A DNA stretch of 64,000 bases from Haliotis rufescens (Eukaryota): contig NW_025964361.1 of assembly GCF_023055435.1 (NCBI RefSeq), forward strand, positions 1,178,001 through 1,242,000, read 5' to 3'. Below the pieces are notes generated by a model, which made no database searches, was not told the origin of the DNA, and saw nothing but the letters and a program-made list of their open reading frames with translations. Positions 1 to 26,400 of the stretch are shown in pieces (within the stretch, counting starts at the first letter, position 1; each line of letters starts with the position of its first letter). Both the position numbers and the translations under genes were made by a program.

Positions 1-485
1 TATGTTTCAGTTTATGGAAGACTGCGTGAATGCTGTTTCAGTTTATGGATGAACGCTATGTTTCAGTTTATGGATGACCTCGTGAAAGCTATGTTTCAGT
101 TTATGGATGACCGCATGAACGCTATCTTTCAGTTTATGGATGACCTCGTGAAAGCTCTGTTTCAGTTTATGGATGACCCAACGCTATGTTTCAGTTTATG
201 GATGACCACATGAACGCTATGTTTCAGTACAGGGATGACCATGTGAACGCTATGTTTCAGTTTATGGATGACCTCGTGAAAGCTATGTTTCAGTTTATGG
301 ATGACGGCGTGAGCGCTGTGTTTCAGTTTATGGATGACCTCGTGAAAGCTATGTTTCAGTTTATGGATGACGGCGTGAGCGCTATGTTTCAGTTTATGGA
401 TGACCTCGTGAAAGCTATGTTTCAGTTTATGGATGACCGTGTGAACGCTGTGTTTCAGTTCATGGATGACCGCGTGAACGCTATG
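1..485 (+). repeat. 33-bp tandem array spanning the splice acceptor of the TTC6-like exon (>=15 copies, runs off the window start)
   Basis: Unit gctatgtttcag|tttatggatgacc(t/g)cgtgaa(a/c); TTTCAG ends at 10,41,66,99,132,165,194,227,260,293,326,359,392,425,458. Confidence 0.97.
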
Positions 486-581
486 AAGGACTACCAGGAG
501 GCCATCAGCCTTGACCCCAGCTACTCCCTCGCCTACTTCAATGCTGCTAACATCTACTTCCACACCAGGCACTTCAAGCAG
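459..581 (+). CDS. TTC6: TTC6-like exon FMDDRVNAMKDYQEAISLDPSYSLAYFNAANIYFHTRHFKQ
   Basis: tttcag| at 458, |gtcagt at 582; 123 nt; TPR motif. True acceptor is ambiguous because of the upstream array. Confidence 0.85.
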
Positions 582-1389
582 GTCAGTTGCCTTCAGACAT
601 ACTGAGGTCAAGTTCACAGCAGGTCAAGGCCCACAGTCAACTCCAACACTTACATAGCCATGGCAATAATTTTACAACAATTTGTTGGAGAACAAGGTTG
701 GAAAGTAATTTCCTTTGTATGCTGGCTGGTGCAGGTTTGCTGGAAATTAGTTGACATTCTGAATACTAAAACATGAGCGCTCAGTTCTGAACTCACATTT
801 GTAACTCACATTTGTAATTCACGTATAAACTGTTGTTTGTCAGGCGCTGGAGTACTACAGTCGGTGTATAGAGAACAATCCCCGAGACGAGTCTGCCTTC
901 CTCAACAGAGCTATCACCAAGGTCAGCTGTGTCCTCATTGTGGTGTGGTCATTAGACCCATTCAGGGAACATTAGTGTAAATGTTGTAGGAGTAGATACA
1001 ATTATCACAAATAGAAATGTATTGCTATTTTCACTGGTCTGCTAAAACACTCTGCTACAGAGCTACCATTACCATCCACCTTTGTGGTAAAAGTGGTAGT
1101 CCAAGTTTGCTGTGCTGCAAGAACCATGTCTGTGTTAAGATGACTCCAGCCCTATAAGCCCACACAGTTGGGTTGTCAGGTTTTGACAAGAATGTTCTAT
1201 GTGAGATGACGAGGACGACGATGACGATGACGATGACGATGATTGATGATGATGATTGATGATGGTGGTGATGATAATAATGACGATGATGATGATGACG
1301 ATGGTGACGATGGTGGTGGTGGTGATGATGATACTAATGACGATGATGAAGATGGTGATGATGACGATGGTGATGGTGATAACGGTGAC

Positions 1390-1426
<37 letters not shown>

Positions 1427-2648
1427 GTGGTGGTGTTGCAGGTTCTCCTGAAGGATGGCCAGTCTGCACTGTCCGACTTCCGCTCCGCCATCAAGCTGAG
1501 TCCGTACTCGGCCCACATGTACTTCAACCGCGGCAACCTGTACACCTCCATGCAGCAGTATGACAAGGCAGAGAAGGACTACACTAAAGGTGGACATGCA
1601 GGACAGAAAACTAGGGATGATTATTGGGCAGACCCGTGGGGATTATGTGTTAAATGTTGATGTTGATGTTGGGATGCGATGACATGCATCAACCAAGTCA
1701 GCGAGCCTGACCACCCGATCCCGTTAGTCGCCTCTTTCGACAAGCATAGTCGCCTCTTACGGCAAACATGGGTTGCTGAAGACCTACCCCGGATCTTCAT
1801 TCATGGGTTTTCTGTATTAGAATTGGTCCCCATATGCATATGCTTTTCAGAAGAGATGACTTAATGGATTGGGGGGTCAGTTTCGGTGCCTTGGTGTATT
1901 GGATGATCATACCCAACTGTGTGGTACAATGCTCATAACATTAATCACCAGTTTGTCTGCTCCAGACCTATTTATAGGCTGTTATCATTTAGCTGGGGGC
2001 GGTCGGGTAGCCTAGTGGTAAAAGCGAATCCCGACATGGGTACAATGTATGAAGCCCATTTCTGGTGTCCCCCGCCGTGATATTGCTGGAATATTGCTAA
2101 AAGCAGCGTAAAACCAAAACTCACTCACTCACTATCATTTAGCTGCAATATTGCCCATAATTAAGGGTGCATATAACACACGAGTGTGTATTATACACGA
2201 ATAAATAAGTCTTGTGTACATTGATCAATCGGAAGGGGTGCTAATTGGGATTGTTCACTTGCCAATATATTAGCAAATATCGCCGTGGGTGCTTATTAGA
2301 GCGGGGCGCTTATTACGTCGAACACGGTATGTGACATGGCCCCAGTAGCTCCTGCTTGTCACAAGCGTCAACTGAAATGAGGATCAGAGGTCAGAGGTCA
2401 TGTTGTCATATAGCTGAAATATTGCCGACTACAGCTAACAACAAACCAGCATAAACAGATAACTTTCCTACAAACCTCACTTTGTGAATATTTGTTTGTT
2501 TTCAGCTCTGAGTCTCCAGCCCGACGATGCCCTGGTCTTGAAGAGGCGTGCAGATGTGCGAGGGAAGCAGGGTAAACGTGACCAGGCCGTGGGGGACTAC
2601 AGGAGAGCCATAGAGCTGCAGACTCGACCCCATAAACCTGCTGAGTAG
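459..2648 (+). CDS. TTC6: 3' part of a tetratricopeptide-repeat protein gene (TTC6-like); join(459..581,844..921,1442..1589,2506..2648); 5' part lies upstream of the window
   Basis: Four GT-AG bounded exons with consistent phases (0,0,1) give consecutive TPR motifs and end ALSLQPDDALVLKRRADVRGKQGKRDQAVGDYRRAIELQ...*, resembling the TTC6 C-terminus as I recall it. Confidence 0.8.
844..921 (+). CDS. TTC6: TTC6-like exon ALEYYSRCIENNPRDESAFLNRAITK
   Basis: ttgtttgtcag| and |gtcagc; 78 nt; TPR motif; not in the ORF track. Confidence 0.9.
1204..1435 (+). repeat. Imperfect (GAT/GAC/GGT)n microsatellite abutting an acceptor
   Basis: Direct read; causes the poly-D/M/H/S/I pseudo-ORFs. Confidence 0.97.
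1442..1589 (+). CDS. TTC6: TTC6-like exon VLLKDGQSALSDFRSAIKLSPYSAHMYFNRGNLYTSMQQYDKAEKDYTK
   Basis: gttgcag| and G|gtggac; 148 nt; canonical TPR (YFNRGNLY). Confidence 0.9.
1669..1800 (-). mobile_element. Family B short retroelement, partial
   Basis: Matches other family B copies (gatgacatgcatcaaccaagtcagcgagcctgacc...ggatcttca). Confidence 0.85.
1996..2132 (+). mobile_element. Family A tRNA-derived SINE with internal deletion, nested in an old family B copy
   Basis: A-box TAGCCTAGTGG, (ACTC)n tail, 13-bp TSD tatcatttagctg at 1983-1995 and 2133-2145. Confidence 0.9.
2150..2327 (+). mobile_element. Truncated copy (right half) of the TA-TSD MITE at 49788
   Basis: Near-identical to 49921-50098. 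Confidence 0.85.
2506..2648 (+). CDS. TTC6: TTC6-like terminal coding exon, stop TAG 2646-2648
   Basis: tttgttttcag|; phase-1 join gives ALSLQPDDALV...HKPAE*. Confidence 0.9.
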
Positions 2649-3653
2649 AGCTGCATCTACCCAGGCATGCTATCTCATAGACCTGTATGAACGTGTTGGG
2701 TGGAGCTGTACATATCTACTGACTGGTGGGTGGCACCAATGATTTGAATGTGAAATCTTGAACCTCTTGGGCAGAGGCCTATACCTACTGATTGGCCAGT
2801 GAGGTCAGACATCTGAGGAGACCCCATACAATTCTTCAGTTTTGAAGAGATGTATGACTACTGATTGTCTTGTAGACTGATGTTCCGCATATGATAAGCA
2901 TAAACCTGTTTGGAAGAACTCATACATCATGTGATCTTACATCGGGGATGAATTTGGGACAACACTTAGAGGACTACACCCCACCTATTGTGTGTGTGTT
3001 CCACGTTGACATGGCATACAGGTACCAATTACCCCTCAGTACAGTCATCATGGTATTCTGTTAGAATGCCGCGATTTCATGGCATAATAATGTGATTATT
3101 TTAAAGAATCTGTGATATCTGTGATTCTGTGATATTGATGTGGTCGCGGAGGAATTATTACCTCAACTTACCCTTTACAAACTCAGATGTTTTATTGATA
3201 GGTGTGATTCCTTTTATCCAAAATATGCTCGTATCAACGCTGCAGCTGTTAGTTCAATAGGTTGCAGTTTGGCCATGTTATACCACTCAACGTTTTATAA
3301 GGATAGTGAATCATTACTTATAATATCTGTAGAGGAAAGATCTTAATGTCCTTATCAAAAGTTGAGTGGTATGTTTCATTATGGCAAATATTCTGTCAGT
3401 ATTAAAGGAATGTGGTGAACATTTATGTGGTTTGCCATTTCTACAGTCACTTCAGCCAAAATGCATGCACTACTTAGGCATCACATTACACAATATTTCA
3501 TCCAAAACCCAACCTTCCACATTCCCTCCTAAATAATGTTTACACCCAAACATTTCGATTCTAGCATGTACAGTGTACCAAATGCCTAAACAGTCAACAT
3601 AATGTTTATGTGATGCTATATGTTATATACAAGTGTTGTTGATGTGATTTCCT

Positions 3654-3659
3654 ATTAAA
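3654..3659 (+). promoter_or_regulatory. Candidate poly(A) signal ATTAAA for the TTC6-like gene
   Basis: ATTAAA followed by T-rich sequence ~1 kb after the stop; another ATTAAA near 3401. Confidence 0.3.
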
Positions 3660-4443
3660 TATATCTTTTGTCTCATATGAATTTATGGAATATTTATGAA
3701 TTTATTATATATTTCAATGTGAAAGACTGAGTTTTCTGAAGCTGAGAAAAGTGATTTTTTTCATTGCAGTGAGCATAACACTTGATATTTCACTGTAGTG
3801 AACTTGACACTTTGACAGAACTATTGTCATAAAAGAGTTACCTGCCCTCAAATTATCTCCCTTTACCTAGTGTCTAGCCTAAACACAAACCGTTGGTGTC
3901 TTTTTTATGTTAGTCCCACATTAACAGGGCAAAATAATGACAGATGGTCATTTCTTGAGTTAATTTTGCTTCTTGCGTTTGTTATTCTCTTGGAAATGTT
4001 TCATCACAAACTGAAAATTTATCATTTAACTCGTCAATTGAGATTGTTGGTTGCGTAAAGCACTCCTGAAAATATCTCCTTTTCTCCTGCCACTTGATGA
4101 GAGAAACATGATATTTCACTCGACACGTGGAATATCCTCCATGTATGCCGCCTGTGTTACACTTCAAGCAAGGTAAATGATTCATCAGGTCAATAATTAC
4201 GTTGTAACCAATTTGTAATAGATAAAGGACTCGGACACTATTTTATTGGGACATAAGGTAGTTGGGAGAATAATAATGTTTCCAAAACTTTCCTTTTTGT
4301 CCTGATAAAGTTCTTTCCCCTCGCATAAGAGCACAGCTCCAACAGGATTGTGCGGATCAGCTACTTCCTGTGATAAAACAACATGGAGTGCTTTACATCT
4401 GAACACTACATGGACTGCATTTTAAGTGTGTTTTTTAATACAA

Positions 4444-4585
4444 GTGAGTGAGTATAGTTTCAGGCTGCTTTTAGCAATATTCCAGCATTATGTTTGGACT
4501 TCGGACATTGTACACCTGTGGGGAATCAAACCCGGGTCTGGGGCATGACAAGTGAACACTGTAACCGCTGGGCTACCCAACCCCC
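4444..4585 (-). mobile_element. Family A SINE, diverged
   Basis: gagtgagtatagttt...ttagcaatattccagca...gctacccaaccccc. Confidence 0.75.
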
Positions 4586-4663
4586 TTTTTAATACTAGAG
4601 TCATTTATTGATACAAACATCTATTCCCCGATGATGACTTCTCTTATGATTCCTTTGTTGACT

Positions 4664-4898
4664 GGGGAGCACGGGTGGCCCAGTCGTCGCGATTCGCTGT
4701 GCAGTGTTGCGTTCGAATCCCGGTTCGCCCCGATTATGTTTCTAGGTTTGTCAGCACCATACCCGTGCTCGTGGGTTTCACCGAAGTGGTAAACGTCTGA
4801 GACCTGCATCACTTCGGGCTTTCCTCCCACATTAAGCTGACACGCCTAATATAACTGTAATACTGTTAAAAGAGGCATTAAACCCAACTCACTCACTC
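4664..4898 (+). mobile_element. Family C tRNA-headed SINE with V-domain-like body
   Basis: A-box TGGCCCAGT, B-box GTTCGAATCC, gtgggtttc...tttcctcccac body, (ACTC)n tail; homologous to 51716-52005. Confidence 0.85.
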
Positions 4899-5144
4899 CT
4901 TTGAATTTCGTTGGCCAATGGCCAGTCAACATTCTTCAAGAAGGCAGTATTCACTGCACCAAGTTGCATCCCTTTCCCAGAACAGCTGACCATAGGTTCA
5001 AATCACAGACTTAATCCGTAAGCGCCTGCAACACAGTGATACTTCAATCTATCAACATGTATCTGGTGTTTGCTTATCTTCATTCGCTGGCATTGTTGCT
5101 ACGCTCTTAGAAAGAAAACCGACACAAGTAGAGGATCCATAACC

Positions 5145-8100
5145 TTTATTCAGTCATGCAAAATAAATGTTATGCTGAAGTTCCTATTTACATATATACA
5201 CAATGACAATGTGCTGGATGGCAGATATGATTGAAAGATATACTATATGTTGGACAACTGCTTGTTGTAGAAAAGTACAAAATGAGTTTGTGCTTACAAC
5301 TTGTATGACTTAAGTGATCAAATGCTTTTAGTAAACCACAAAACTGAAACCCTTTCCTGAAAGGAACATATATCAGTCAGTACTAAACTGGAATGATGCT
5401 AGATTAAATTGTCCATGATTTCAAACCATTAAAGCTAGGGGTTCCCGTGGTACTGAAACAACCAAACTAAAATGAATTCCATCTGAAATTGTCATGTATG
5501 TAGGACAAAAATAAGACAACACATAATATTGTACAATAACAATGATGTAAGAATCTTTTTTGCAAGACAATGCAACTAGACTTTACAATCAGTGGACTGG
5601 ACAGTAGTACCTATGTGATATGATTGGAGATAGCACCTAGACAAGGCTGGATGATACGTGAAATATGAATATCAAAATATCTTCTGTCGGTATAAAAATA
5701 GTTTGATGTGAGTTATGGCTATAGAAGTTGCATTGTCTAAGCCAGGTTGCTGCAAGTCAAGCACACTAACTATTCAGCTGGGATGGAGGACGAGGAGTGA
5801 ACGACGGTGCTTGTGCTGCCTCCTCACATGGAGACTGGGACTACGAGGGTGTGTCGTTGTTCAGCAGACACCTCTGCTTCTCTACAGAGGATTAAACATT
5901 CATCATCATCAAATCTAACAAACTTTGGGATTGACCATTGTATTCACTTGGTAAATGAAAACGAAATTGTCAACACCACAAATTGGTTCCGCTTCTCATG
6001 TAAAGAACCACAATGAGACTTTTTTACCACCATGAACATAGAATAGTCGGTCCTAATATACAGATGAATATTGTTATTGTAGCACTAGTCATCTGTGATA
6101 GAAAAATAGTTAATACATTTCAAGAATCTCAAAAGACAATCACATCTAAATACTTTTGAATTTGTTTAACGTATGTTGAAAAGCTTTCACATCTAACATG
6201 TTTCATAAATAGGTTTGAATGGTTACAATTGCTGGTTTTGAAAATATGACCCACCTCTGTAGAGAGGGTATCCCATTTCTGGCTATATTTACATGTATCA
6301 CACAAGCCAACACAGCATGTCACAGAGGTGGCTCTACCAGCAGACAAACTCACCATGGCTCCTTTCCATCATGATGTTAGCCTCTGGGAAGCTATCCAAA
6401 CTGACACTGATATTAATTCAGAATACTGTAGAACTTTCAAAAACCATACATTTCTCTCAGAAATAACCTGCCCAATTATACAATCCTCCCATGAGTAAAG
6501 TGAGGAAAGCTGGCATGTTTTCAGATATCAATATTTGATATATTTGGCCAAATCAATGTCGATTCAAATCTTAATTTGCAAAAATAAAACTGATTGATTG
6601 AAAATATGTTTTAAACATCTTTTCTTAATTGCATTGATGGAAAAACACATTTGAAATATGCCTCACTTCTTGCATATGTTACTGAATTTTCCTTAAATTC
6701 TGAAAACTACCAAGTGTGACACCATCCCCTGTATGCAGGCATGTACAAGGTGTATTACTAGCTGCACAACGTCCTGGGTCTATGGTGAGTACAGTTCTAT
6801 AACACTCTTGTCACACCCTCCAAGCTGGGATTGGCTCTAGAGTGCAGGGTTCCACACATGATCAATGATACATCTAATAACAAAACACCAATCAACAAAC
6901 ACGACAGATCCACAACCAACCAATCAGAGGCAAGATAGCATTGTGAATGTTCCAAGTCAAGACTGACTTTACATTATATAGCAAATTGGTACTCAATGTT
7001 TTGTACAGTGACTGGTTGGCAAACCCATCAAACAATAGATGATACAATATTTAAAGAGAATATGATGCAAGTTGAAACTAAAACTTCTCCAGTGAAAGTG
7101 ATGAAAAATGTTTACTGGCTAAACGTATCATTTATTTACTGTTGTTGCTTAAAGTCCTTGTCACAGCATGAGACACAACATCACATTCAGTGTCTACATG
7201 TACTTTGGCATGTTGAATATTTTGGCTATATCAACATCTAAAATCTGTCTATACTGACTGGAACGTGTTTCTTTGGCTACTGAAAAAATGCATCGGAATA
7301 AGATGACGATGATCACGACATTTTACTGGCCAGTACTTTCTTAGACTAACACAAGTAATGCTGATTTTTCTTACTCATGGACGCTGTAGTTTCTGATAAA
7401 TGATCGCTAACAAGAAATAAAACTGAACAAAATGCAAATATAAGCAAATAATCTCTTGCAGTTTCTATCTCTGTAGTCCATGCCAAGTCTGAATTTACTA
7501 GCCCAAAATTATTTTAGTATTCAATCTTTAAGTATTATCATCTTGAAATATCCCTTCTTTCATACCCTAAATTGCTGCGATACAAAAAGACAAAGTGGTG
7601 CTCAATCTTGGTACTTAAAAAGATAATTTTTAAAACGGTACATTGAAACAAAAAGCTTGCTGATCTTTTCTCAAGGGAGTGAGAAGCAAAAGCAATAATA
7701 TTTTAAAACATATCTCAATTTCCTTTACAAATTAAAAGATCTGTGATGATTGGCTCTATGATCAGGTTGTATGGGACTCGGGGATCAACAAGAGATCTAC
7801 AGCCGATGTTCATCAATGATGGCTGTGAATATACCTAGTTGTCAAGAATATACTACCATGGTCACATGGAATGTCAAAGGTCATTGTAGTGACTTCCTGC
7901 TCAATTTGGAGTTAGTTCTGTGACACATGTAAATGAGTTCATTCCAGAAAGACAGGTCTTCAGGTCCAAGAAACGTGAATGTTCACAAACGAAAAAGGAC
8001 CTGATCCAACTTTCCCACCACAAACAAGGTTCATGAACGTATGTACATATATATCCTCAATGGAACAAATATTACCTGACAAAACCAAAGAAGAGATGAA

Positions 8101-11100
8101 AGTACAGTGCATTTAAAGAAAATCACTTCAAACTTAAAAGGTCAGATTAGAATTGATTTTCCATATGATTCAATAGCTGTTTTTGACAGAAGTGAAATAC
8201 AAGTCCCTGTACACAGTAGCATAATACATTATTCATATTGTACAATACAGTGAGGATTCTATGTTACAGAAGCACCGCTATCAGTGTGTTAGGTCCAGAC
8301 ACCATCAGTAAATAACTCCTTAACTACATATCACCAAACTTGTCACACCTGTCCAATATAGACACGACTATCTAGATCCAGCTGTGAATTTGTAGCAATG
8401 TACTGCTCTGCTTTTACTATCCAACATTGTCGTAGTTACGTACTGCCCTGCTTTTACCATGTTTACTATCCAACATCGTCATAGTTACGTACTGCCCTGC
8501 TTTTACCATGTTTACTATCCAACATCGTCATAGTTACATACTGCCCTGCTTTTACCATGTTTACTATCCAACATCGTCATAGTTACGTACTGCTCTGCTT
8601 TTACTTTCCAACATTGTTGTAGTTACGTACTGCCCTGCTTTTACTATCCAACATCGTCATAGTTACGTACTGCTCTGCTTTTACTATCTGAAATTGTTGC
8701 AGCTATGTAACTCTCTGCTTGTACTGTCCGAAATGATTGTAGCAAGGTACTGCTGTTTTCACAATCTGACATTGTTGGATAGTACAAGCAGTACAGAGCT
8801 ACAATTTCACAGCTAATCAATGCCCTGTATAAACCCGGATGTTTTTGCACAGCAAAGACGGTATAGTAACAAAACTAACAACTCTAAACACAATCATCCT
8901 CAACTCTTGGAAGGGGATTATTAAATAACCAACATTTCTTAAATGGGGATAACTGCACGAACAAGCAAATATGAATTATTCAAAAGTGAATGACAAGTTG
9001 CAAATTTCGTAAAAATTGATTAACAATGCTCAAAGTAACAAGAATAACATTGCACCCATCTTGTTCTAGTATTTTCATCATGGAGGTAAAAAACAACATT
9101 TGAAACAATTCCTGTTTTCAAAATACATTACCTTTCATCATTAAGTTCAATGATTAAGAATGAACAGACTTAATAATCCTCGGACTAGTGTTGTCATAAA
9201 CACAATAAATTACCTCAAATTATATTCACAGGATATCGATCAGAATCCATAAACAAATTGTTTACATGAAGTAAATTTTGCAGCCGTTCATCATAAATTA
9301 ACATCCATCCATTGAGCCCTACTACACAGATCCTACAAGCAGAAAGAATTAACTACCAAGCTAACTGAAGCACTCTGCCATTTATTTTTCCATGACTAGA
9401 AAAATATTAATTATAGTAAAAATATTTCAGCTATTGGGCAAGATACCATATTATTCTATGTATGTCAATAAATATCAGGCCAAACACCAAAACAAATCCT
9501 ATAGAATAGCAAGTGAAGCGAATGCTACTCAAAGTGTGTTGTAGTTACGTGACACATTTCCTACACAATATTAGCACATCCGCTAATAGAAAGGATCTGA
9601 CAGGATTTAACCATACTGAATCCTATTTGATTTTTAAATAGACATTGATTGACTGACTGATTGCACAGCACACGATCACATTCAACATTATGGTAATATA
9701 TTTAAGATTAAACAGCATTGCAGATGCTCCCCCTCCCCCTCCCCCCACCAAACCAGTGTAAAGTGTAACATTTCAAGGTTTTGTAACAAAAATATTTTGA
9801 TAAACATCAAAATATTTTTAAATCCACACACTTAAAGCAATATGGTTCACAATATTTTGCATTGATGCTTGAATAAGAGTTGAATTTTTCATAATCTCAT
9901 TGCACACTTTGACGTCATCCTTCGAAGAGCTACGAATGCAGTAGTTGACAGAAAACAACGTCCTGCGCTGTTTATGTTTCTAATAGAGTTGAGCACTGAC
10001 TGTGAAAGATCTCTTGAATGGCTTGAGTTAAGGCACACTTTTCAGCACCACAGAATCAGGTCCTATGTAACGATGCAGTCAACTCACATTACAATAGTTG
10101 CGATATGTTTCTTTCAAAAAGTCCTAAAGGACAAATATATGCTACACCTCTCATCACTAGACGCAGGACCTCACTCATCTTGAAGCAAGGTCTTCATCAC
10201 TAGATACAGAACACACCATTATTTTCCTGACAAAAACTGTCGAAACATTCGAAACATTTTGCATATCAACTGTCTTCTGAAAGTGCAGGGGTATTTCAGT
10301 CCAAACTCACATACATGCAAACTTCCACCCATCAGATGAATAGACACGGAGTCAGGTGTATCGTGTCAGACTCATCGAAACCCATCTCTCGAGACTTTTG
10401 ATGTCAAAAACCTGGTTGAAACTTGTTTCCATCAAAATCACATCGCCTAGGAAACGGATTCAGAATCCACTACATCCATAGTTCAGTATTACAGGATGCA
10501 AGTTCACGCATCTCTCTCCTTGCATCCAAAGCAGCACTTTTGATAATAGTTTCCATAAGCTTGCCTATCAATCAAGCATTTGATCACAAAGCAAACATGT
10601 CTTATTGTCACCAATAATGAGCCACGATGGCTCCAAATAGACCCCAAAAACATTTCATATCACATTCATGACTCTCAAAATCTGAGCAATCACTGCCATA
10701 AAGGCTAGCTGAGGCATCTCTGATAAAACCAATGCTTACAGAATTCTATCTGACAGAATCCTGAATCAAACAATTACTGTCAAAATTCTCACTGGACATA
10801 TCCGTCAGAAGCAGCCTTGATCTTGGCAGCCAACGGAAGCAGCAATGGAAGCAGTCACTCACAGATACCCAAGACAGAATCTCATCAGATTCCACACAGC
10901 GGACAAACTCCTGGACTACCAGCAGGTCAGCAGGTCATCTCAACATCACACTTCAGCAGACAGTGTATAGAGAACACAGCTGGATTTCCCTGGTCTGATC
11001 CAGCTGAGACAGGTTTGGACTAGTCATCCTTGCAGATGGGTCGATGGACACTTGGAGAATCTTTATTCCATAATAACAGTGGAGAAATGTAGTGTTTTGA

Positions 11101-11370
11101 CAATGAAGGGCGAAGTTGGTTTCATCTCAAGGACGTATCGACGAGGTGAAGGACAGTCAGAGAGATGAATGGAATCATTGTGGATACAGATGGAAATGAT
11201 GGTTATCAAACTCCTGAGACTTGGAAGATGACAATCACCATGGAAACATGATGGTTGTCATGGTAGTGTGTTGATTAGAGCCAGGTAGACAGCTGAGACT
11301 TGACCTTCTTCAGGTGGAGGAGTCCTGAGGGCCACTTCTTGAGCAGGGCGAGTGACCGCTTTCTTGCTAG
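5145..11370 (-). other. Probable long KLHL5 3' UTR, with AATAAA at 5150-5145 (other AATAAA near 7131 and 9381)
   Basis: About 6.2 kb with no recognisable SINE, unlike adjacent introns, ending at an AATAAA on -. Confidence 0.5.
8401..8760. repeat. 40/49-bp minisatellite (~7 copies, decaying) in the putative 3' UTR
   Basis: tactgccctgctttta[ccatgttta]ctatccaacatcgtcatagttacg. Confidence 0.9.
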
Positions 11371-11430
11371 TCAGCTAGAAGGGACATGGACCACACACGC
11401 GCCCGCTCGACCCGTACACAGTGACGCAAC
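11371..11430 (-). CDS. KLHL5: KLHL5 terminal coding exon [19 protein letters not shown]
   Basis: ttgttgtttcag|; TGA at 11373-11371. Confidence 0.95.
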   Translation of the reverse strand, partial: VASLCTGRAGACVVHVPSS

Positions 11431-14400
11431 CTGAAACAACAAACATCATCATCCTTGAAACAATGAGTAGCACCATCTTTGAAACAACATGTCTCTGCTA
11501 TCAAAATTTGTAAGATTTGTCAGTAAATGAAATTAAGTCATGGATAACGCAGGGCTTTTTTACTTCAACCATGACATCATCCTTGAAATAACAAACAAAA
11601 ACATCATTGACAACAAACAACATGCTTGACAACAATAACAAAAAACATTCTTGAAACAGAAAATAACATCATCCTTGAAACGACATGTCTCTGCCATCAT
11701 AAGATTTGTCAGTAAGTGAAATTACGTCGCGGATGACACGCCTTAAGGGGGTGGTCGGGTAGCCTAGTGGTTAAAGCGTTCGCTCATCATGCCGAAGACC
11801 CAGGTTCGATTCCCGACATGGGCACAATGTGTGAAGCCCACTTCCGGTGTCCCCTGGCGTGATATTGCTGGAATATTGCTAAAAGCGGCTTAAAACCATA
11901 CTCACTCATTCACTCACAGGCCTTAAGACCCCAACTATCATTTTACAGAAATACTCCTTAATCATATATTATCAACAGATTTTACTGAAATACTCTTTAT
12001 TAATATTATCAACAGATTAAATAGGACAGTGGACTATGCTTTCAAAAGACCAATATTCAACTTTTCACCAAGGTGATCATGAATGACACTATCAGCCATG
12101 CCTGCGCGTACCAGACGGGTGAAGCACCAGTAAAATCTCCACTATAGCCCCACGCTTGCTTGTAACACATACCTTGGTCCACTCATTGGTGATGGGATCA
12201 TACGATTCCACATCATTGAGGTACTGTTGGCCATCATAACCCCCCACAGCGAACAGCTTGTCTCCTAGTGGGCAGAGGCCCACAGCATCTCGGGGGGAGC
12301 TCATCGGGGAGATCATGGTCCACTGGTCCGTCTTCGGGTCATATCTGGGGGAGATTCAGTATCGTGTCACCAGTGTCAAACAGAGGATGACAATCATTTA
12401 CGGAGCTACTACTACTACAACTACAACTACTACTGTAATACAATAACTTGTTTGGGGTGAAAAAGTGAGTAGAGGTTTGATTCTGCCACTGTACAGCTGC
12501 CAGGCCAAGCATCATGAATGAAATCATCTTGGTTTGTCACTTTTGATCCCTCCGGCCAGAAAATCATTACAACAAAGGAATATAACTCTTCGTTATTTTT
12601 TCATTAAAGAATTTCTTACAATCAAATGAAAATATCACAGAAGTATCTATACAACTATTATTTGCATTTGCATAATATTCCAGATAAATGACAGCAGCCC
12701 GTAAATAACCAAGTCTGGACCAGACAAACCAGTGATTGATATAATGAGCAACGTTTCAAACTGACATGGTAGGATGACACGGAATCAACCAAAGCACCAA
12801 GTATCGAGTACGATATGCATAGGTTGCTGGGGACCTGTTCTAACTCAGATTTCCATTGGGCCCTCTAAGAAAATGTATCTGCCAATGATGAGTGGTCCAT
12901 TGTTTATCAGTGAACTATAAAGCGGCCCTTCAACACATTATAGTCCTCACCGTTCTGCACACTCAAATCTGCTGCAGGTGGGGTTGGTAGCCGGAGCCTC
13001 GTGACCCCCGACAGCATACAGGAACCCGTTACATGTAGCCACGCCCACGCCACCCCGCCGTTTGGACATCGGGGTGCAGTGTGTCCACTTGTTGGTGTGT
13101 GGGTCGAAACACTCCACCGACTTCAAGCAGGAGCTTCCATCACGACCACCCACAGCAAACAATCTGGTGGAAATAAAAAATTGTTTTACTCCCAACTAGA
13201 GCATCCTGAAATACTGTTTCTGTGTTAAGTTTATCACTGTGAATCCATACTGAGCACAGCAACACACGGGGAACCCTGTCACAGATGAGAACAATTTTTA
13301 TGGCATAACCGAGGATCATCTGAGACTTAAGTATCTTCAGCTAGTCATCAATTTGTTTAGTGACAGAGGGAAACTCTATAACAGTCATACCATAAAACAC
13401 ACTTCATTTATCAAAATAGCACCTGGTTCACTAACCTAATAATGCCTTCAACACACAATCAGTAGCTTGTTAAATTTGTGATGTAATTTCAAAATGCTGC
13501 AGTTTGTGCATCAGTTTTTTTCTCAAAATAAGCAAAGAGAGGTTTACATTGCTTTTAGCAATGTCACAGCAGGGGATGCCAATAATGGCTTAACGCATTG
13601 TACTCTTGTTGATAATTAAACCTGGTTTTCCATGTGAAAAAAACCAACCCATTGACTACCAGGCTAGTCTGCCCACTAAGCTGCTTCAGGACGAAGGCTA
13701 CTGGTGATAAGTTAGCCCAATGGGTTGGTACTACTGGGAAACTATTTCCCACACTGCCCAATATGGAACATTTTTAACATACATGACCCAGCAGGAGAAA
13801 AGGGACCTTACAAGTGAAAAAATCACATCTTTGAAAAATCATCTTCACAATTCACAAGCTTCAATTTATATTCATTACAGAGATACTGACATCAAAAATT
13901 TGGATTCATTTTCTGCAAAGTCCCATTTTCAGACTTATTACTGTTTATGTATTAGGTGCAGCTTTTAAATATAATGTCTGATTAATTGAACATAGACATG
14001 TATGCTGAAATGTTTGAAATAATGCTTTTACTACATAGCGAACTAACGAGAGAAAAATTAGATATTTTTGTACAGTCCGCACACATGGCCATTTTTTACG
14101 GAAGTAAGTTGACGTCACATGTCCCTCTTCATGACGTCACAACACAACTGTTTCCTAGCACCCATAAGGTCCTTTTCTCATGGTGGGTCACATAGAATCT
14201 TGTCAAGGGATATGACGTGACAGCTGTCCCCACAACCTTCTACAGGATGAAGACATGTGTCCACTGCGTGTTGTACTTACTTCCCAGCAAGGGAGGCGAC
14301 GCCCACGGTGCTGCGTGTGGTGGACATAGGGGCCACATAGCTCCACTGTCGGGCCTGGGGGTCCCATCGCTCCACGGTGTTCAGGTATGACCAGCCATCA

Positions 14401-17400
14401 TGTCCTCCCACCGCGTACATCGGCCCCTCCAGAACACCCACTCCTGCAGAAGACAAGGCATCAGATCAGTGACAAGAAATAAAACATAGCCATTGAAATC
14501 AAAACCATCTCTTTCAGCACTTGACCATGGCTTCACAATCTCATTAAAATCAGACCTTAGTTCTCGTTACCGCTAAACAAAGATCTGAGGACATCCCATT
14601 AGGGGTCACGTCAGAACGACCTTTCATCTGCCCAATCAGAGCGTCGCTTACCAGATCATAAAAGTGACAGTCGGAATGTGATTTCTAATCATGCATCCTC
14701 GTAAACTTTAACACAGGGTATTCCGAACAATAGTTACGAGTTTAACGACTGAATCCCTACAATCTGGACCATCTATTAGCCATTCCAGAATATTCTTTTG
14801 TTCAGGTTTCAAATTTTTAATCGAGGTTTTGTCAAAATATGTTTCGAAGTGTTGTTGCCAATTTGAAAATAGTGCCATAAAGCACGAGAAAGCTGCCTTC
14901 TGATTGGTCATTCCATTGGTCGGTCAAAGTTCGCGCAAGGTTGGTCTGACGTGACCCGTAATGGGATGTCCTCAGAACTAAGATCTGATTTTAATGAGAT
15001 TGATGGCTTCAAGAATTGACAATAAGCACACATAATAAATCAACAAGGACTAACTGATCTTAACACTGTGACTGTCGTAACTTCCCTACTCTAACATAGC
15101 TAACAACAGTCATATCTTCAAAGTCATATTTGGGATAACACTTTCTGAGTAAAGTACAGATTCTCGTACTTGTTGTGGGTCAACAGTATCCCAAGTCAGC
15201 CTTACCCAGACCATGCCTGTGGGTGGACATAGGAGGCATGAGAGTCCACGACTTCTTCTTGGGGTCGTAGCACTCCACGGTGTTGAGAGTCTTCAGCCCA
15301 TCTCGGCCCCCAACGACAAACAACTTGTCCTCCAAGACAGCAACACCAAACTGCAGCCTGCGACCATTCATGTTGGCCACCTGCGTCCACGTGTTGGTAC
15401 GGAGGTCATACTTCTCGATGCTTGTGGCTCCTGGAACAGTAAGACAATCTGAGACTACGCAATTTACATCTCACTGCTGCACTGCCTCGAGTCCAGTGCC
15501 TGTTCCACAAACCGATCTTAGCGCTAAGAGGATTGTAACTCCTCCACCTTAACATAGATAGACTTACGACAATCATAGCACTATGATCGTTTTGTGGAAC
15601 GGGGCCCCTGAAACTAGAAAGCATGGCTGTAGTAGAACTAGCATTTGTCTAAGCCGTTTGTCATGGTCAAAACTGATAATATTTACACCTGACCAGAAGA
15701 TCTTAATAAGTGCTGTAATCTGATTGGTTAAAAACTTTATTGAATGAAACTGGTTACCAGGATGTGAGGACTTTTCACTACACATGAATACTTCGATCTC
15801 TTTCTCAAACCCAAATATGAAAAAAACATCTATTCCGGCTCGATGACAAAATACTGCATTGATCATATAAAAGTTTGACCAATATTTATCCTAACAACAA
15901 GTTAGTTGTTTTTCTCCACATTTTGCAAACGAGGAAGGTTCTGTTGTGATGAGAAGCCTAGGACGCCATCTACTGTATCATGACGTACGTACTAGCATAC
16001 CAGTGAGAACTCACACAGTGTAACAGAAACCTACTGACAAGTTTTGTGTTACTTCATTAAACATAATGGGTTTTCACATGTCACTGGATATCAAAATTTC
16101 CAGAAATGTTAAAATCAGAAACCTCTGGCTAATGTCAGATCTAAATGAAATAAGCTACAACTCTTCAATGGTTTTACATCCGATTTGAAAATCAATCAGT
16201 AATCTAAGGGCCTTTTATTGCAGTCATTATCTTGATCAATTGACTTCCATTTCAGTCTTTAACAATGGAGTTGATGGCGCCACCTGAAGTAAATGTCACA
16301 TTCAGTAGCTAAGAGTAGATTTCACAAAAGCAACTGTCTGACTTAGGAACTCGACAGACCTATGTTCCAAGATAAAACAATGTTTAATACTTGAAGTACT
16401 GACAAGACTAGGAGAAATTTGGGGAAATTTTCAAAATATGACAAATATAGTGGCTGAAATTTTAGTTTACCAGGCTACTAACATAATATTGTCGGGGCAG
16501 TCGGGTACCCTAGTGGTTAAAGCGTTCGCTCGTCACGCCGAAGACCCGGGTTCGAATTCCGACATGGGTACAATGTGCGAAGCCCATTTCTGGTGTCCCC
16601 CACCGTGATATTGCTTGAATATTGCTAAAAGCGGCGTAAAACCAAACCCACTCACTCACTCATAATATTGTCACTTTGTGATTTTAATGCATTCCCATGT
16701 TGTAGCCTTATTTGTATTCTGTATTCTACATAACAAAAAGAATTAACATCACTATTAGCTATCAGTTATGTCTGTGAGATATATACATCTAATATTTGTT
16801 TTCAGAAAGGAAATCCTATTAACAGATACCCTATGCATATTGAACAAAGCATGCTACATATAACCAGTGCTTCATCTATGACAGTAATACCGACAGTGCT
16901 CATACACATCGTCTCCAGAGACTAGTATCAGTTTATAGATACGAGAGTTACTGAAATGCTGATGTGAAGTTACATCCAGAACAGCCAACAAAGGAAAAGT
17001 CCCCGCGCATCAGGTCAATTTAATCGTAATAATCTGACTTAAACTTTGTAACAGATACGATGATGACTTGGTGTGGCCATAATAAACATTGCAGACAATG
17101 TCTGACATTTACCATATCGTGCGTTGGCCTCAACCAGCCCAATAAACAATGATCAAAGTTCCTTCTAGTTTCAGTAAGGAGAACTAATTTATCTTGAGGG
17201 CTTTGAGCTGTCATCACTTCCAGTCTATCCCATCATTTGGATAAATATTCACATTCTGGCAACCTTTTTCATGGGCAGTTAATACTAACATGATAATTGA
17301 TACTAAATATTTACTGTAAATGCCAAACTGTTTTCACTTTATATATACTTCAGTTTGCCTCTTCAACCAATATTTCAAAGAGACTAGTGTCTTTCAACTA

Positions 17401-20400
17401 CTCTCAAACTTTGTAGCTGATGAAACATTAAATGAGATATTAATAATTGAATCGCTGGTGCCAGTGATTCACAGAAAGACATACCAAAAATATATACAGA
17501 TATTACAGATGGAAAAAGATTTAATATGTGATCTAGTTATGATACCTTGTTTGGTCATTGGGCTTTAGATGCTTGCTGTTTCAGTATCGGAATCTAGGGA
17601 CCATTTAACCATTGATTTGCAACATGAAAGTTTTTACCATGAACTCGTGACTTATTTTGAAACACAGTGATGCTATGCCAAAAGGCGAGGTATAAATGAC
17701 CCTGATGATGGACTTGTGAGGCTTACCTTAGGTACAGTCCATGCCTCCCACGGCATACATGACCCTGACGGTGGACTTGCAAGGCTTACCTTTGGTACAG
17801 TCCATGCCCCCAACGGCATACATGACCCTGACGGTGGACTTGCAAGGCTTACCTTTGGTACAGTCCATGCCACCCACGGCATACATGACCTCGACGGTGG
17901 ACTTGCAAGGCTTACCTTTGGTACAGTCCATGCCTCCCACGGCATACATGACCCTGACGGTGGACTTGCAAGGCTTACCTTTGGTACAGTCCATGCCTCC
18001 AACAGCATACATGACCCCGACGGTGGACTTGCAAGGCTTACCTTTGGTACAGTCCATGCCTCCAACAGCATACATGACCCCGACGGTGGACTTGCAAGGA
18101 TTACCTTTGGTACAGTCCATGCCTCCCACGGCATACATGACCCAGACGGTGGACTTGCAAGGCTTACCTTTGGTACAGTCCATGCCTCCCACGGCATACA
18201 TGACCCCGACGGTGGATTTGCGGGGCTTGGTGCGGGGGCTCTGGAAAGAGGACCTGCGCTCCGGGAGCAGATGGTACTTGAGGGCCTCCATGATCAGGGT
18301 CTGGCACTCCTTGTCATCCCGGAACAGTGGGTTCGTCTCCACACAGTCCGCAATGAACTGACAGAAAAAAAGCAACACATAGAGTCAAGCTTTATATACA
18401 GGAAGATTTAATGCCAGTATTAGCAACCTATGTAATGTCAAACCATTTACTTTAAATTCATGATCCATTTCGTCCTTATAAATGGGTAATATTGTGTTAT
18501 GTTTTGTTTATTCTTTTAAGATAAATAGATTTTTATCAAGGAAAGGAAACCTAAGACACACAACACAAAAAATTTCTAAATACCTTCCCGATAAAAAAAT
18601 AAAAATTATTGGGGATTATGTTACTTTCGTCTTACTAGATAGGAAACCAATACACAAACTGAATATATTTAAAAAATCAATGATGAGTGGGAGTTGTTTA
18701 TCATACAATAAAACACTGCAGGTAGAATAACCATGAGGGTGTGGCTCATCAACTGGGAACAACTCAATAGACAATTCCTTCTCAAAATAACGTCTTCCAA
18801 AAAAAGACATCACAAGTTGCAAGCTCATGTTTGAATCTCTAGATATGCATCATGACAACACACTCAATACCCACATACCCAAAACGAACTCTGCAGGACT
18901 TTGCTGCTATGCACATGACATATTCTACGTAATAGATACCACAACCCTAGGCAATTATTCCCTAATATTAGAAATATCGGCATTTTCTTTAATACGGTGA
19001 CAGTTATAAATTCCACTGGCAAAACTTGAGTCTTTCCCGGAGGCAGGTCTTTGTCAAATGTAATCAATACTAATCATAACCATTCTTGCCCATAACACCG
19101 ACTCCACACCCTAATCTCTCATCTATCTGGCTTCTCTCAATCTACTGATCATCCCTACAGCTTCAGGAGGAGTCCGGCAATCAATACTCCGCCAACGGAA
19201 GCCAGACGCTCATGTTCATCCATCCCTTCTAACCAAACGTTGTACTTCTCAGTTTTCACTTGTCAATAATTACTGCTTTCCGTTTCGTTACCCTCCATAC
19301 GAGACGCTCCTTCCCTTACAATACGAGCCACATCGGAGCATGCTTGATCTCAGAACATAACTTGCTTAATGTGGAGCATGGTTGTAATACTATCACCAAT
19401 TTACACTCAAATAACCTCCCAAACACGCAAAACCAAATCAGCCATGTTATCTCTTATGATTTTGGCACAACCAAAGCCAGAGTTTCACCACATTATTTCA
19501 GTCACGCTGATGGAATTTCCATTTCTATAATGACATGTATGGAAGTGTACGTCCTCCCCAAACAAAGTAAATCCGCACACAACCACATTAATTGTCGCCC
19601 TCCTTGGAGACCCACCGCTTGCTAATTCGGCAATTGCTGGCTATCCCAAGATGCTGTTAGTTTCCCCTCAATCAACAACCTGAACCAGATTGAGACATTA
19701 AGTAAGTCTTGACCCTAACATGGCAGGGTCAGTGTCACCAAAGAAGCATCTCCCAGACTGACAGGGTGACAAGTAGCTGTTAGGCATGTAGTGGTCAATA
19801 TCGCAGACAGCCACAACAGGGATGATGGGGAGAGTGAAGGGGTGTTAAGCCAATCAAGTGACTGAGGAAGGTTTTACGCCACATTATCATCACTGCAGCT
19901 TAAGATGGAGTTCCGGTTCCAGAAACTATATTGGTTTTGGAATCGAACCCTGATGTTTGGTATGATGAGACAAGCTGTGGCCTGTGAGTGAGTAGGGGTG
20001 ACTTCCACTTCATCAACATTTCAGCTTTAGACATGGAGATCAGATTTAAAAAGATTTTCTTTCGGTTTTGGAACTGACCCCAGGTCTTTGGCATTACTGA
20101 GTTGTAGAGTTTTACACCCATTGACAACATTTCAGCTTTGGACATCGAGATTTGGCTTCATGAACTGTATCAGATTCTGGACTGATCCCTGAGCTGACTT
20201 GCACCAATGATCTTAGCGCTATGACTACCTAAAGTCTTGCACCAGTGATCTTAGCGCTATGACTACCTAAAGTCTTGCACCAATGATCTTAGCGCTATGA
20301 CTACCTAAAGTCTTGCACCAATGATCTTAGCGCTATGACTACCTAAAGTCTTGCACCAATGATCTAAGCGCTATGACAACCTAAAGTCTATGTTACAGTC

Positions 20401-23400: not shown

Positions 23401-26400
23401 AGCAGCTCTAGATGAAGCTGAATTTAGAAAATGAACAAAGGAATCAGGCATTTCTATTTTAGGATTACAAGGAGTTTAGCCTAATTTCTGTGCTTAAATT
23501 CCCCTTCATCATCCATCATTCTAGAGTAATCATCAAATTGAAAAATGTTTTGAATTGGTGAATACAATCATTATTCAAAACCAAATATTTTAAAATTTCA
23601 ACCCTCATTGTTGGTTTCTTTCAAAATTAAGAAAAATATCCAATAATATATCTGTCCCACTATATATATAGCTGTTGAAGTTATCCATAATTCACATGGA
23701 TCTAGTTCAACGACCATCAGCTGTTTACAAGCCAAGGTTACCCAACTGAAGAACTCCCTTGTCGTCACTTAAAGGAACGAGCCTGATCCCTATGGGGCTT
23801 AAGCCCCGGCACTCAACTATTGTCAGAATGGAAATAATCATCATTAATTAATGCAGAGCACACCATCGACAGGTCTGAACTTTTGATTAAATGCAGTGGA
23901 GTGGAGTGGAGGCAGTGGGGGATTACTGCATCATGAGTGACAAAGGGGAACACCATCAGCAGCAGCAGCCAGAGCTGTACACAGAGACAGAAGACTGTGG
24001 CCAAACGCTGGTTCAGGCTTGTCAAGCTTATTTATCATTTCTGTCAGAGAATGGTAGTTTTTCATGTAGGAGCTTAGCTACAAGGTATTTCTTTGAGAGA
24101 TCATGTAAGTTTATTAACTTGCAAAGAAAAAAAAATGGCCATTTTGACATTTTGGGATCTCGGAGAGAAGGTATTTCTGTGATGATAACACACCTTTTTA
24201 ATAACTGAGAACATAGATACAGAGTGTTTTAAGAATGCATGTCGATTTTCTAACCCAAGCTTAGATACAAAGAATTTCTGTAAAAAGATTGTAGGATATT
24301 GATAACTACAAAAACATACACTGATACAGATACTGTCGTCCTGAATGCTATTTATAAGACGTGAATCATTAATAATGAATGAATTGTTATCTTTGACAAG
24401 GAATAAAAATATCCAAATTTAATTTGGAGGTTTTAATCATATATATATTTTTTGGAATAGTTTCTTATAAAACAAATAATTCAATAGACACAGATAAATA
24501 TCTCATATGACCTTTTCAAACTCAGTTTTTGGGACAATCTTCTCACAAGACCTGCACATAACCAAGGCATTAGTCAAGTGGAAATGACATGTTGGATATA
24601 CAAGCCACAACACATGCTTGTCATACAGACAATAGACGTATTCTTACACTGTAGTCTTGAATCAATAGAGAATTGGAAAAAAACATATCTCAAAGCAAAA
24701 AACACACGAAGACTAAGCCAAGGGTGCTTTGTTCACAATGAACCTCCAACACAAAAGGCACGCTAGTGAGGCCATATATTGTGGTGGGAGCCCTACCCAG
24801 GCCACATGATGGCCTGCTAGAGCCCTCTGGGACGATCAGAGTCTCCGTTATCTAAGGTTTACAATAACTCTGCACACAGAATGAGTCTGAGTTCACATAA
24901 ACAAGCAATGGGATTACCTGAGTCTTCACGTAGGTTTTAGACGTGGCATAAATGGACTACTACAAGTTGTTGAGAGAATGAATGGAGTTTCAGACTGCCG
25001 GTTGTATACATTGAAACCCTGCAAATCTGGATGCTCGTTTCCAGTAAAACTGGCACATTGTCCTGATTAATGGGGTTCAATGCACCAACCACAAATAGTT
25101 GTTTCAACAGTAATTGTTCGGAAGAAAGGGTTGCTGCATTAACAGTGTCCACATAAATGAGGTTTCATTGTATCCTTTTGATGAATATTCTGATTTAGCA
25201 CAGATAGACCAATGGGTAATAACATGAAGTATTTCCCATATAGGTTGAAATACTGAATGTAAAAATCTTTCGATATTTGCACTTATGCATTTTAGTGAAT
25301 CTCTGAAGTTGGATGGGCAGTCAAAGCTACATGACATCATACTCCTGCATTGTTAAAAAAATCCATATAACATCATCCACTTTTTGTGACATCAGAAATG
25401 GACAATGATTTCACAGCAGAAACAGCATCTTGGAGAGCTGACGTTTCATAAATTTTCTTCGCTTTCTTTTTTAAATTGACAATGGATGGAGGCTTGGGAT
25501 ATCATTTCATCATTCAGGATAGACAGTCCATTATTCCTACAGCAATCAGAGCCATCAAACTCCAAGGTCAAACTAGGAATCTTGTCATGGACTCCACTCC
25601 AAGTCCACAAAGCCAACTCAGTGCATGCCATGACTACCGCAACTTGATCACAGCACTAAGGTCCAAAAGTAAACAGAGCTTCAGCCATTTTGACCACCTA
25701 ATTCCCATCTAAGCAACATCTGACAAGCATGGAACCGATTCCAGTCTATACTTTACAGGGAAAGGTCTGATGTCTTAACCTAATTTGTAAAAGCTCTCAC
25801 CTGTGGCGCCATCAGTGGAAGCTTGATGTGAGACAGAAGTTTGGGAAGACATTTTTTCCTGTTATTCAAATCATGTTTGGACCACTTGACAAGAGCTTCG
25901 AAGATGGTTTCTTCGTTGGGTACGTTGAGGTCATCGCTGGCAAGGAGGTTACAGACTTCCTCCGACGGGAGGATGAGGAATTCCTGGTTGTTCATCACCT
26001 CCACAAAGTTCTCCTGCAACACCAGGGACATGGGCATTGGAGTGCTGCTGACAGACTACAGCAGTAGAAACTAACAGTATTCGTCCACTAGTCCTTATAA
26101 TCATAACATTAAGCAAAACCCTTAAAAATGGCAATTTTCTACTAGTCCTTATGATACCTTTAACATTGAGCAGTTTGGCAAGGACTATAGGACTAGTGCA
26201 AATTTCTAACCATTGACTACTGAATACACTCAAGGATGTGCATCCCACTAGACACAAAGTTCTACCTGCTAATTACACAGCGAGAGAGTAATCATATGGC
26301 AGATGAGTGACCGTCTGAGTAAGAGTGAATGAGAAAAGATTTAAAGTCACTTTGGCAATATCAAAGACTCTGCAAGTGAGCGTTTGAATTTTGTTTTATG

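Follow-up and report, generated by a model that had tools for sequence, protein, structure and literature searches.

A window of 64,000 nucleotides from Haliotis rufescens (assembly GCF_023055435.1, contig NW_025964361.1, forward-strand positions 1,178,001 to 1,242,000) contains two minisatellites whose repeat units run across an exon-intron boundary, one over an acceptor of a gene for a tetratricopeptide repeat (TPR) protein and one over a donor of a neighbouring BTB-BACK-Kelch gene. Both are probably ordinary intronic minisatellites, of the kind named "mirages" in amphioxus, whose founding duplication happened to straddle the junction. Arrays of this kind recur in unrelated genes of the same genome, at the frequency expected from random placement and without bias toward unit lengths divisible by three (3n). 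A splice-site variable number tandem repeat (VNTR) system selected for its reading frame, which an original prediction made from this stretch had proposed, is not supported. The arrays belong to a repeat type already known, here apparently in a new lineage.

Two minisatellites across splice junctions

The original prediction placed one junction-spanning array in each of the two neighbouring genes, and Tandem Repeats Finder (TRF) recovers both where they had been described, in head-to-tail layout and with units of minisatellite size (33 bp x16.8 and 63 bp x8). The acceptor-spanning minisatellite, delimited by TRF and copy alignment, occupies positions 1..485 (+) plus 55 bp upstream of the window (L001:846-1386). 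Within the window, TRF reports 50-485 with a period of 33, 13.3 copies, and 86% matches; the array runs off the window start, and 900 bp of upstream DNA (L001) bring it to 16.8 copies. Its unit joins the 9 nt at the end of an intron (ATGTTTCAG) to the 24 nt that open a TPR-gene exon, and every copy reads ATGTTTCAG followed by TTTATGGATGAC...GCT, with the junction TTTCAG|TTY. The array thus comprises 16 TTTCAG acceptors, the authentic one and 15 decoys, and takes up only the last 513 bp of the 1243-bp intron. Two variants (..CTCGTGAAAGCT and ..GGCGTGAGCGCT) alternate over five copies, which creates a 66-bp higher-order period. The TPR frame is open across the nine exon-proximal copies (open reading frame (ORF) 186-605; 139 aa), and copies of 29, 25, 31, and 32 bp break it farther out.

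The authentic TPR-gene exon (459..581, +; phase 0) encodes FMDDRVNAMKDYQEAI...HFKQ, starts FMDDRVNAMKDYQEAISLDP...HFKQ and is followed by gt; it matches Pfam TPR_11 (E 4.9e-7). A protein search with the ORF at 186-602 as the query returned 14 short ORFs of other organisms (P0001-P0014). Seven of these (P0002, P0007, P0009, P0010, P0011, P0013, and P0014) are intron read-throughs that end ...Q directly before FM.D and therefore have the same phase-0 intron. Five others (P0001, P0003, P0004, P0005, and P0008) are intron-less there and read ...LLTNRGV..QFM.DRVNAM... continuously. The exon pieces were compared with an intron-less homologue one at a time: the preceding TPR-gene exon (L001:3-116, ending ...NRGVIQQ, then the donor gtgcgt) aligns with residues 9-46 of P0005, and window positions 459-581 align with residues 47-87. 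No gap separates the two pieces, and the last, exon-proximal acceptor is therefore the functional one. Judged from these alignments, the conserved TPR protein is predicted to arise only through that acceptor, the other 15 being decoys within the 1243-bp intron. None of the TPR homologues compared has inserts of repeated blocks. The intron itself is old, because the same phase-0 position occurs in ORFs of several other species. An intron before FM.D is present in the ORFs of some species and not in those of others, and this patchy presence indicates that the position was gained or lost among animals.

The donor-spanning minisatellite lies at 17692..18228 (-) and consists of the authentic copy and seven decoys (TRF: 17692-18228, period 63, 8.5 copies, 94% matches). 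The 63-bp unit combines the last 52 nt of a BTB-BACK-Kelch exon with the first 11 nt of the following intron (GTAAGCCTTGC). The authentic donor lies after base 18168 on the minus strand, where the exon end is directly joined by GTAAGCCTTGC, and the decoy donors follow on the same strand after bases 18105, 18042, 17979, 17916, 17853, 17790, and 17727. Six of the seven keep AAAG|GTAAGC, the other having GTAATC, and six match the authentic donor exactly over ACCAAAG|GTAAGCCT. The copies are 90-100% identical, two neighbouring ones being the same in every base. The reading frame of the Kelch gene stays open over seven copies, and in the eighth an in-frame TAA stands just ahead of the last donor (read-through ORF of 216 aa). 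The 63 bp beyond the eighth copy are unrelated sequence (40% identity).

The authentic exon of this gene (18168..18357, -) encodes the end of the BACK domain and the start of Kelch blade 1 and ends in phase 1. The next Kelch-like exon (15206..15430, -; ATSIEKYDL...HRHGLG; acceptor ...tactgttccag) starts at 15430 with the rest of the codon that the phase-1 donor after 18168 interrupts. The intron between the two measures 2737 bp, and the array, with the seven decoy donors inside it, forms its first 477 bp.

Long open frames through both arrays (139 aa and 216 aa) could also be taken to mean that the arrays are true coding repeats, translated within an exon rather than copied into an intron. We consider this extremely unlikely. 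The copies of 29, 25, 31, and 32 bp break the TPR frame, the upstream TPR exon needs a donor-acceptor join to give the conserved sequence, and the seven ORFs from other species read through their intron up to the Q directly before FM.D. Read-through in the Kelch gene would stop at the TAA and lose the remainder of blade 1 if no donor were used.

Array placement in an independent set of introns

An independent set of junctions was assembled by searching the 1.33-Gb genome assembly with the dynein-heavy-chain family PF03028, which gave 26 loci from 16 genes; the placement test rests on 16 dynein loci. Full-length dynein proteins were fetched with one exon as the query, and introns were annotated by tblastn with splice-site refinement, yielding 32 complete introns with 64 junctions and 17 TRF arrays. 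We found two further junction-spanning arrays, both at donors. A 59-bp x19.5 array in one dynein gene (L038:377-1527) carries about 24 nt of the exon end (...LTSYPSDK) and AAG|GTATGT in its unit, and a 58-bp x4.4 array in another (L037:1290-1543) carries 40 nt of the exon end and GAAG|GTAGGT. A 22-bp x33 array begins at intron base +1 and has GTGAGT in each unit (L058:2029-2752). The proximal donor in the dynein genes keeps the spacing of the homologues, with residue-count differences of 0 and -2. A 31-bp x32 array (L040:1710-2712), at first a candidate for a junction-spanning array, proved to be purely intronic, as the spliced alignment sets the donor 56 bp upstream.

A borderline 26-bp array beside a dynein acceptor (L050, G000:C135:6540665-6540994) was left out of the count. 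It is followed by about three inverted copies, and some of its units hold TAG|GTATGT.

For the null expectation, each array was collapsed to one unit, and the founding unit was placed at random in its own collapsed intron; an array was counted as spanning if it had at least 3 bp on either side of the junction. The 64 dynein junctions have 2 spanning arrays against 3.01 expected (standard deviation (sd) 1.40), and a second null, in which placement is uniform over the whole of the collapsed introns, likewise gives 3.01. For all 43 introns (86 junctions), 4 are observed and 3.27 expected (sd 1.49). About 3% of junctions in unrelated genes are thus spanned by an array. This is what random seeding predicts for a genome with 9-17% of its sampled DNA in tandem repeats: 17.4% in the dynein loci, 9.2% in other loci, and, as 34 TRF rows after merging, 11.3% in the 64-kb window. 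Minisatellite density is 0.3-0.45 per kb across the samples. A kinase search gave mostly intron-less copies, which served for background repeat density only. A lineage-wide process of short tandem duplication that reaches exon edges, as originally proposed, is borne out by the arrays in unrelated dynein genes and by the published mirages. The enrichment at junctions that had been suggested along with it is absent from the independent sample, and the 3n share of all minisatellites is near one third, which are two of the three counts that the original prediction had named as refuting it.

Several observations weigh against the reading of these arrays as chance products of intronic duplication. 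The window genes alone (11 introns, 22 junctions) have 2 spanning arrays where 0.26 would be expected (P about 0.03; 0.25 under the second null), a figure that is not independent since the window was picked for its two arrays among 802 windows read in the genome. The dynein sample of 64 junctions is small, such that a roughly two-fold enrichment or a several-fold depletion would both fit it. Arrays that end at most 40 collapsed bp upstream of an acceptor number 6 against 2.0 expected (P about 0.02), and a Kolmogorov-Smirnov test for the 43 introns gives P 0.055; beside donors there is no excess in these introns (3 against 2.0 expected). These values hint that array placement inside introns is not perfectly uniform. 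Finally, the decoy sites are intact and identical in sequence to the real ones, so some use of them is possible.

The placement figures could reflect a process, tied to splice-site sequence, splicing, or transcription, that makes splice junctions preferred seeds for tandem amplification. The two arrays in the window would fit such a process, as would the surplus of arrays whose ends lie 10-40 bp upstream of acceptors and the dynein array that begins exactly at intron base +1. We nevertheless regard it as unlikely, given that the unbiased dynein sample falls below expectation under both nulls, that most arrays of the same introns contain no junction, and that arrays are common outside annotated introns too (0.31 per kb in other loci).

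Other repeats were seen in the dynein introns. Microsatellites of (GAT)n/(TGA)n lie against exon edges in two loci (L047:1895-1986 and L045:2635-2665), where the run starts 2 bp past the exon match or ends 10 bp before the acceptor. About 250 of the 453 bp of another dynein intron consist of 18/36-bp units (L035:1248-1495), in each of which CTTACTGAC or TTGACTGAC, read on the gene strand, resembles a branch point.

Unit length, reading frame and spare splice sites

Both window arrays have 3n units, which the original prediction had read as a possible sign of selection for frame. Among minisatellites with a period of at least 7, 3n units make up 23 of 63 in 45 other loci and 9 of 27 in the window, together 32 of 90 (36%). 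Periods of 14, 22, 35, 38, and 39 had been listed for the purely intronic arrays of the window. These are correct, and all of them are in introns of the Kelch-like gene, but the scarcity of 3n units among them, which had been taken as a signal, is the two thirds to be expected. The arrays at junctions are a small sample for a 3n comparison. The independent ones have units of 59 and 58 bp, and the 22-bp array amplifies a donor 33 times, which together with the 3n share speaks against selection for 3n units. The exons that flank these non-3n arrays are open and 37-77% identical to homologues, so the dynein genes are apparently intact and frame preservation is not required for an array to persist.

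The frames of both genes had also been described as open proximally and broken or stop-bearing distally, and this description holds. As additional evidence for frame selection it fails, since any 3n unit copied mainly from coding sequence keeps the frame open of itself: with 24 or 52 coding nt and 3-4 codons derived from the intron, nearly every copy will be open. The 3n units and open frames of the two arrays are probably a coincidence plus the automatic result of copying coding sequence.

A functional splice-site VNTR would require that decoys are used and 3n units selected, with copy number setting either a quantised exon length or expression coupled to nonsense-mediated decay (NMD). Two 3n arrays that are open in frame over seven to nine copies, with decoy sites identical to the authentic ones, are what such a system would look like, and yet we judge it very unlikely. 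The arrays of 59, 58, and 22 bp reside in dynein genes that are apparently intact, 3n units make up one third overall, and open frames come with any coding-derived 3n unit. Use of the decoys would add 11-aa blocks to a TPR repeat of 34 residues or, in the other protein, 21-aa copies of a strand of a Kelch blade, which would presumably be damaging; homologues have no such inserts, and the known precedents are silent.

The spare sites are probably silent here as well. It is very unlikely, in our estimation, that they are used at a low, copy-number-dependent rate, in which case thousands of polymorphic junction arrays would act as heritable dials of isoform ratio (through in-frame inserts for 3n units and through NMD for the others) and as raw material for intron sliding or gain.

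Known systems, a possible mechanism and wider meaning

Units spanning the boundary, the defining feature of mirages, are found at both window arrays (TTTCAG|TTY and AAAG|GTAAGC), and the exons concerned are backed by homologues and Pfam. Mirages have been described in amphioxus in Adh3, the globins BflGb6 and BflGb9, troponin C, and PGBD5, at 5' and 3' boundaries (PMC3087553, PMC3902484; Canestro et al. 2002 cited therein). They are reported not to disturb splicing: reverse transcription PCR (RT-PCR) showed regular splicing, a comparison of alleles revealed length polymorphism, and the arrays were proposed as raw material for intron gain (PMC3087553, PMC3902484). The abalone arrays share with them a minisatellite unit that lies across an exon-intron boundary and multiplies the splice signal together with the exon edge. 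Also shared are units of tens of base pairs (10-72 bp in amphioxus Adh3) and homogenised inner copies next to degenerate edge copies, as in the amphioxus globin arrays. They differ in that the cephalochordate cases were described gene by gene, whereas here the frequency was estimated at about 3% of junctions and set against a random-placement null; and regular splicing was demonstrated there by RT-PCR, whereas here it is predicted from genomic sequence.

Similarly, the 37-bp VNTR in intron 7 of human F7 has its first element across the junction, and only the most upstream of its identical donors is used, by 5'-to-3' scanning (PMC1557585). The 63-bp array has the same layout, an authentic donor followed by identical pseudo-donors. 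The F7 array is one locus of a genome poor in repeats, and experiments have proved that only its most upstream donor is used, whereas in the abalone such use is predicted. The F7 work has no counterpart to the acceptor-side array, and no experimental precedent was found for site choice among acceptors. A polymorphic 27-bp intronic minisatellite is known from a gene of another abalone species (PMC6905558). In the Rogers model, introns are gained through tandem duplication around AG/GT (PMC4974935, PMC3265369, PMC2891723). Tandem duplication that includes splice signals is common to that model and the arrays described here, but the model has a duplication within an exon make a new intron, and the introns studied here pre-exist. 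The original prediction had named intron gain as a possible outcome. This finds no backing at the TPR gene: other species have an intron at the same position, the array accounts for no more than the final 513 of its 1243 bp, and no new intron was seen.

We infer the following mutational mechanism. Short tandem duplications with units of about 10-100 bp would arise throughout the introns of this genome and then grow and shrink through slippage or unequal exchange. Where a duplication falls over a junction, the exon body would retain one intact edge copy, with the extra copies and spare sites on the intron side. Normal mRNA would be produced via the copy nearest the exon body, that is, the first donor or the last acceptor; on the acceptor side, exon definition is assumed to favour the acceptor nearest the downstream donor. 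Because that copy would still yield normal mRNA, an array would be close to neutral at any unit length. The identical adjacent 63-bp copies and the 66-bp higher-order pattern point to recent turnover, and the degenerate outer copies are a further sign of it. In minisatellites generally, the copies at the edges tend to be degenerate.

The remainder of the TPR gene lies downstream of its array, with exons at 844..921 (+) and 1442..1589 (+; Pfam TPR_1, E 1.3e-10) and the last coding exon at 2506..2648 (+; stop TAG). A 221-bp (GAT)n run (1205-1425) approaches the exon at 1442 to within 16 bp of its acceptor. The assignment of the other gene to its family rests on its BTB/BACK exons, identified with Pfam: a BACK exon at 25801..26013 (-; E 8.8e-26), a BTB/BACK exon at 26532..26728 (-), and a BTB exon at 57666..57939 (-; E 1e-21). 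Further Kelch-like exons occur at coordinates below the one at 15206-15430; neither the gene's last exon nor the 5' end of its first BTB exon could be located. That these exons are Kelch-like, and that the gene resembles vertebrate KLHL4/5, was read from the translation by eye. A 97-bp x2 duplication (26745-26934) leaves out the acceptor of the BTB/BACK exon (26728), ending 16 bp upstream of it. The 31-kb first intron of this gene contains 2.7 kb of a 39-bp unit in 72.8 copies (53558-56215), and these repeats, open in several frames of both strands, produce false ORFs of 307-559 aa that can mislead gene callers.

Several other elements were seen in the window and the genome. A dispersed element resembling a short interspersed nuclear element (SINE) is present at 2025-2116 and 11807-11898, the two copies being 90% identical, and its end, TAGTCGCCTCTTACGACAAGCA, is often duplicated once. 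A 22-bp SINE-like tail occurs at 1725-1769, 20989-21033, and 28423-28467, and the element is also found in loci L020, L013, and L021. ARAGORN calls no tRNA genes in the window. At least 15 myosin-head gene copies are clustered on one contig (G000:C113:12.86-14.29 Mb), and in many of them the short exon matches lie within very long open frames (800-1900 aa). Elsewhere (L004-L006 and L008, G000:C13:14815671-14824951), four kinase-domain copies that lack introns and score equally or nearly so are spaced about 1.6-2 kb apart, with 218-220-bp tandem arrays between them.

To the published mirages the present analysis adds the random-placement test and the 3n test. For genome annotation, the arrays carry a warning: ORF finders and gene predictors run across arrays at junctions will return long open frames that are false. 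If about 3% of junctions in this genome carry perfect spare sites, they would turn a 1.3-Gb genome into a large natural test of how the spliceosome selects one of several identical sites, with donor and acceptor sides and with in-frame and out-of-frame units. Such arrays would also bear on whether duplications at junctions feed intron sliding or gain.

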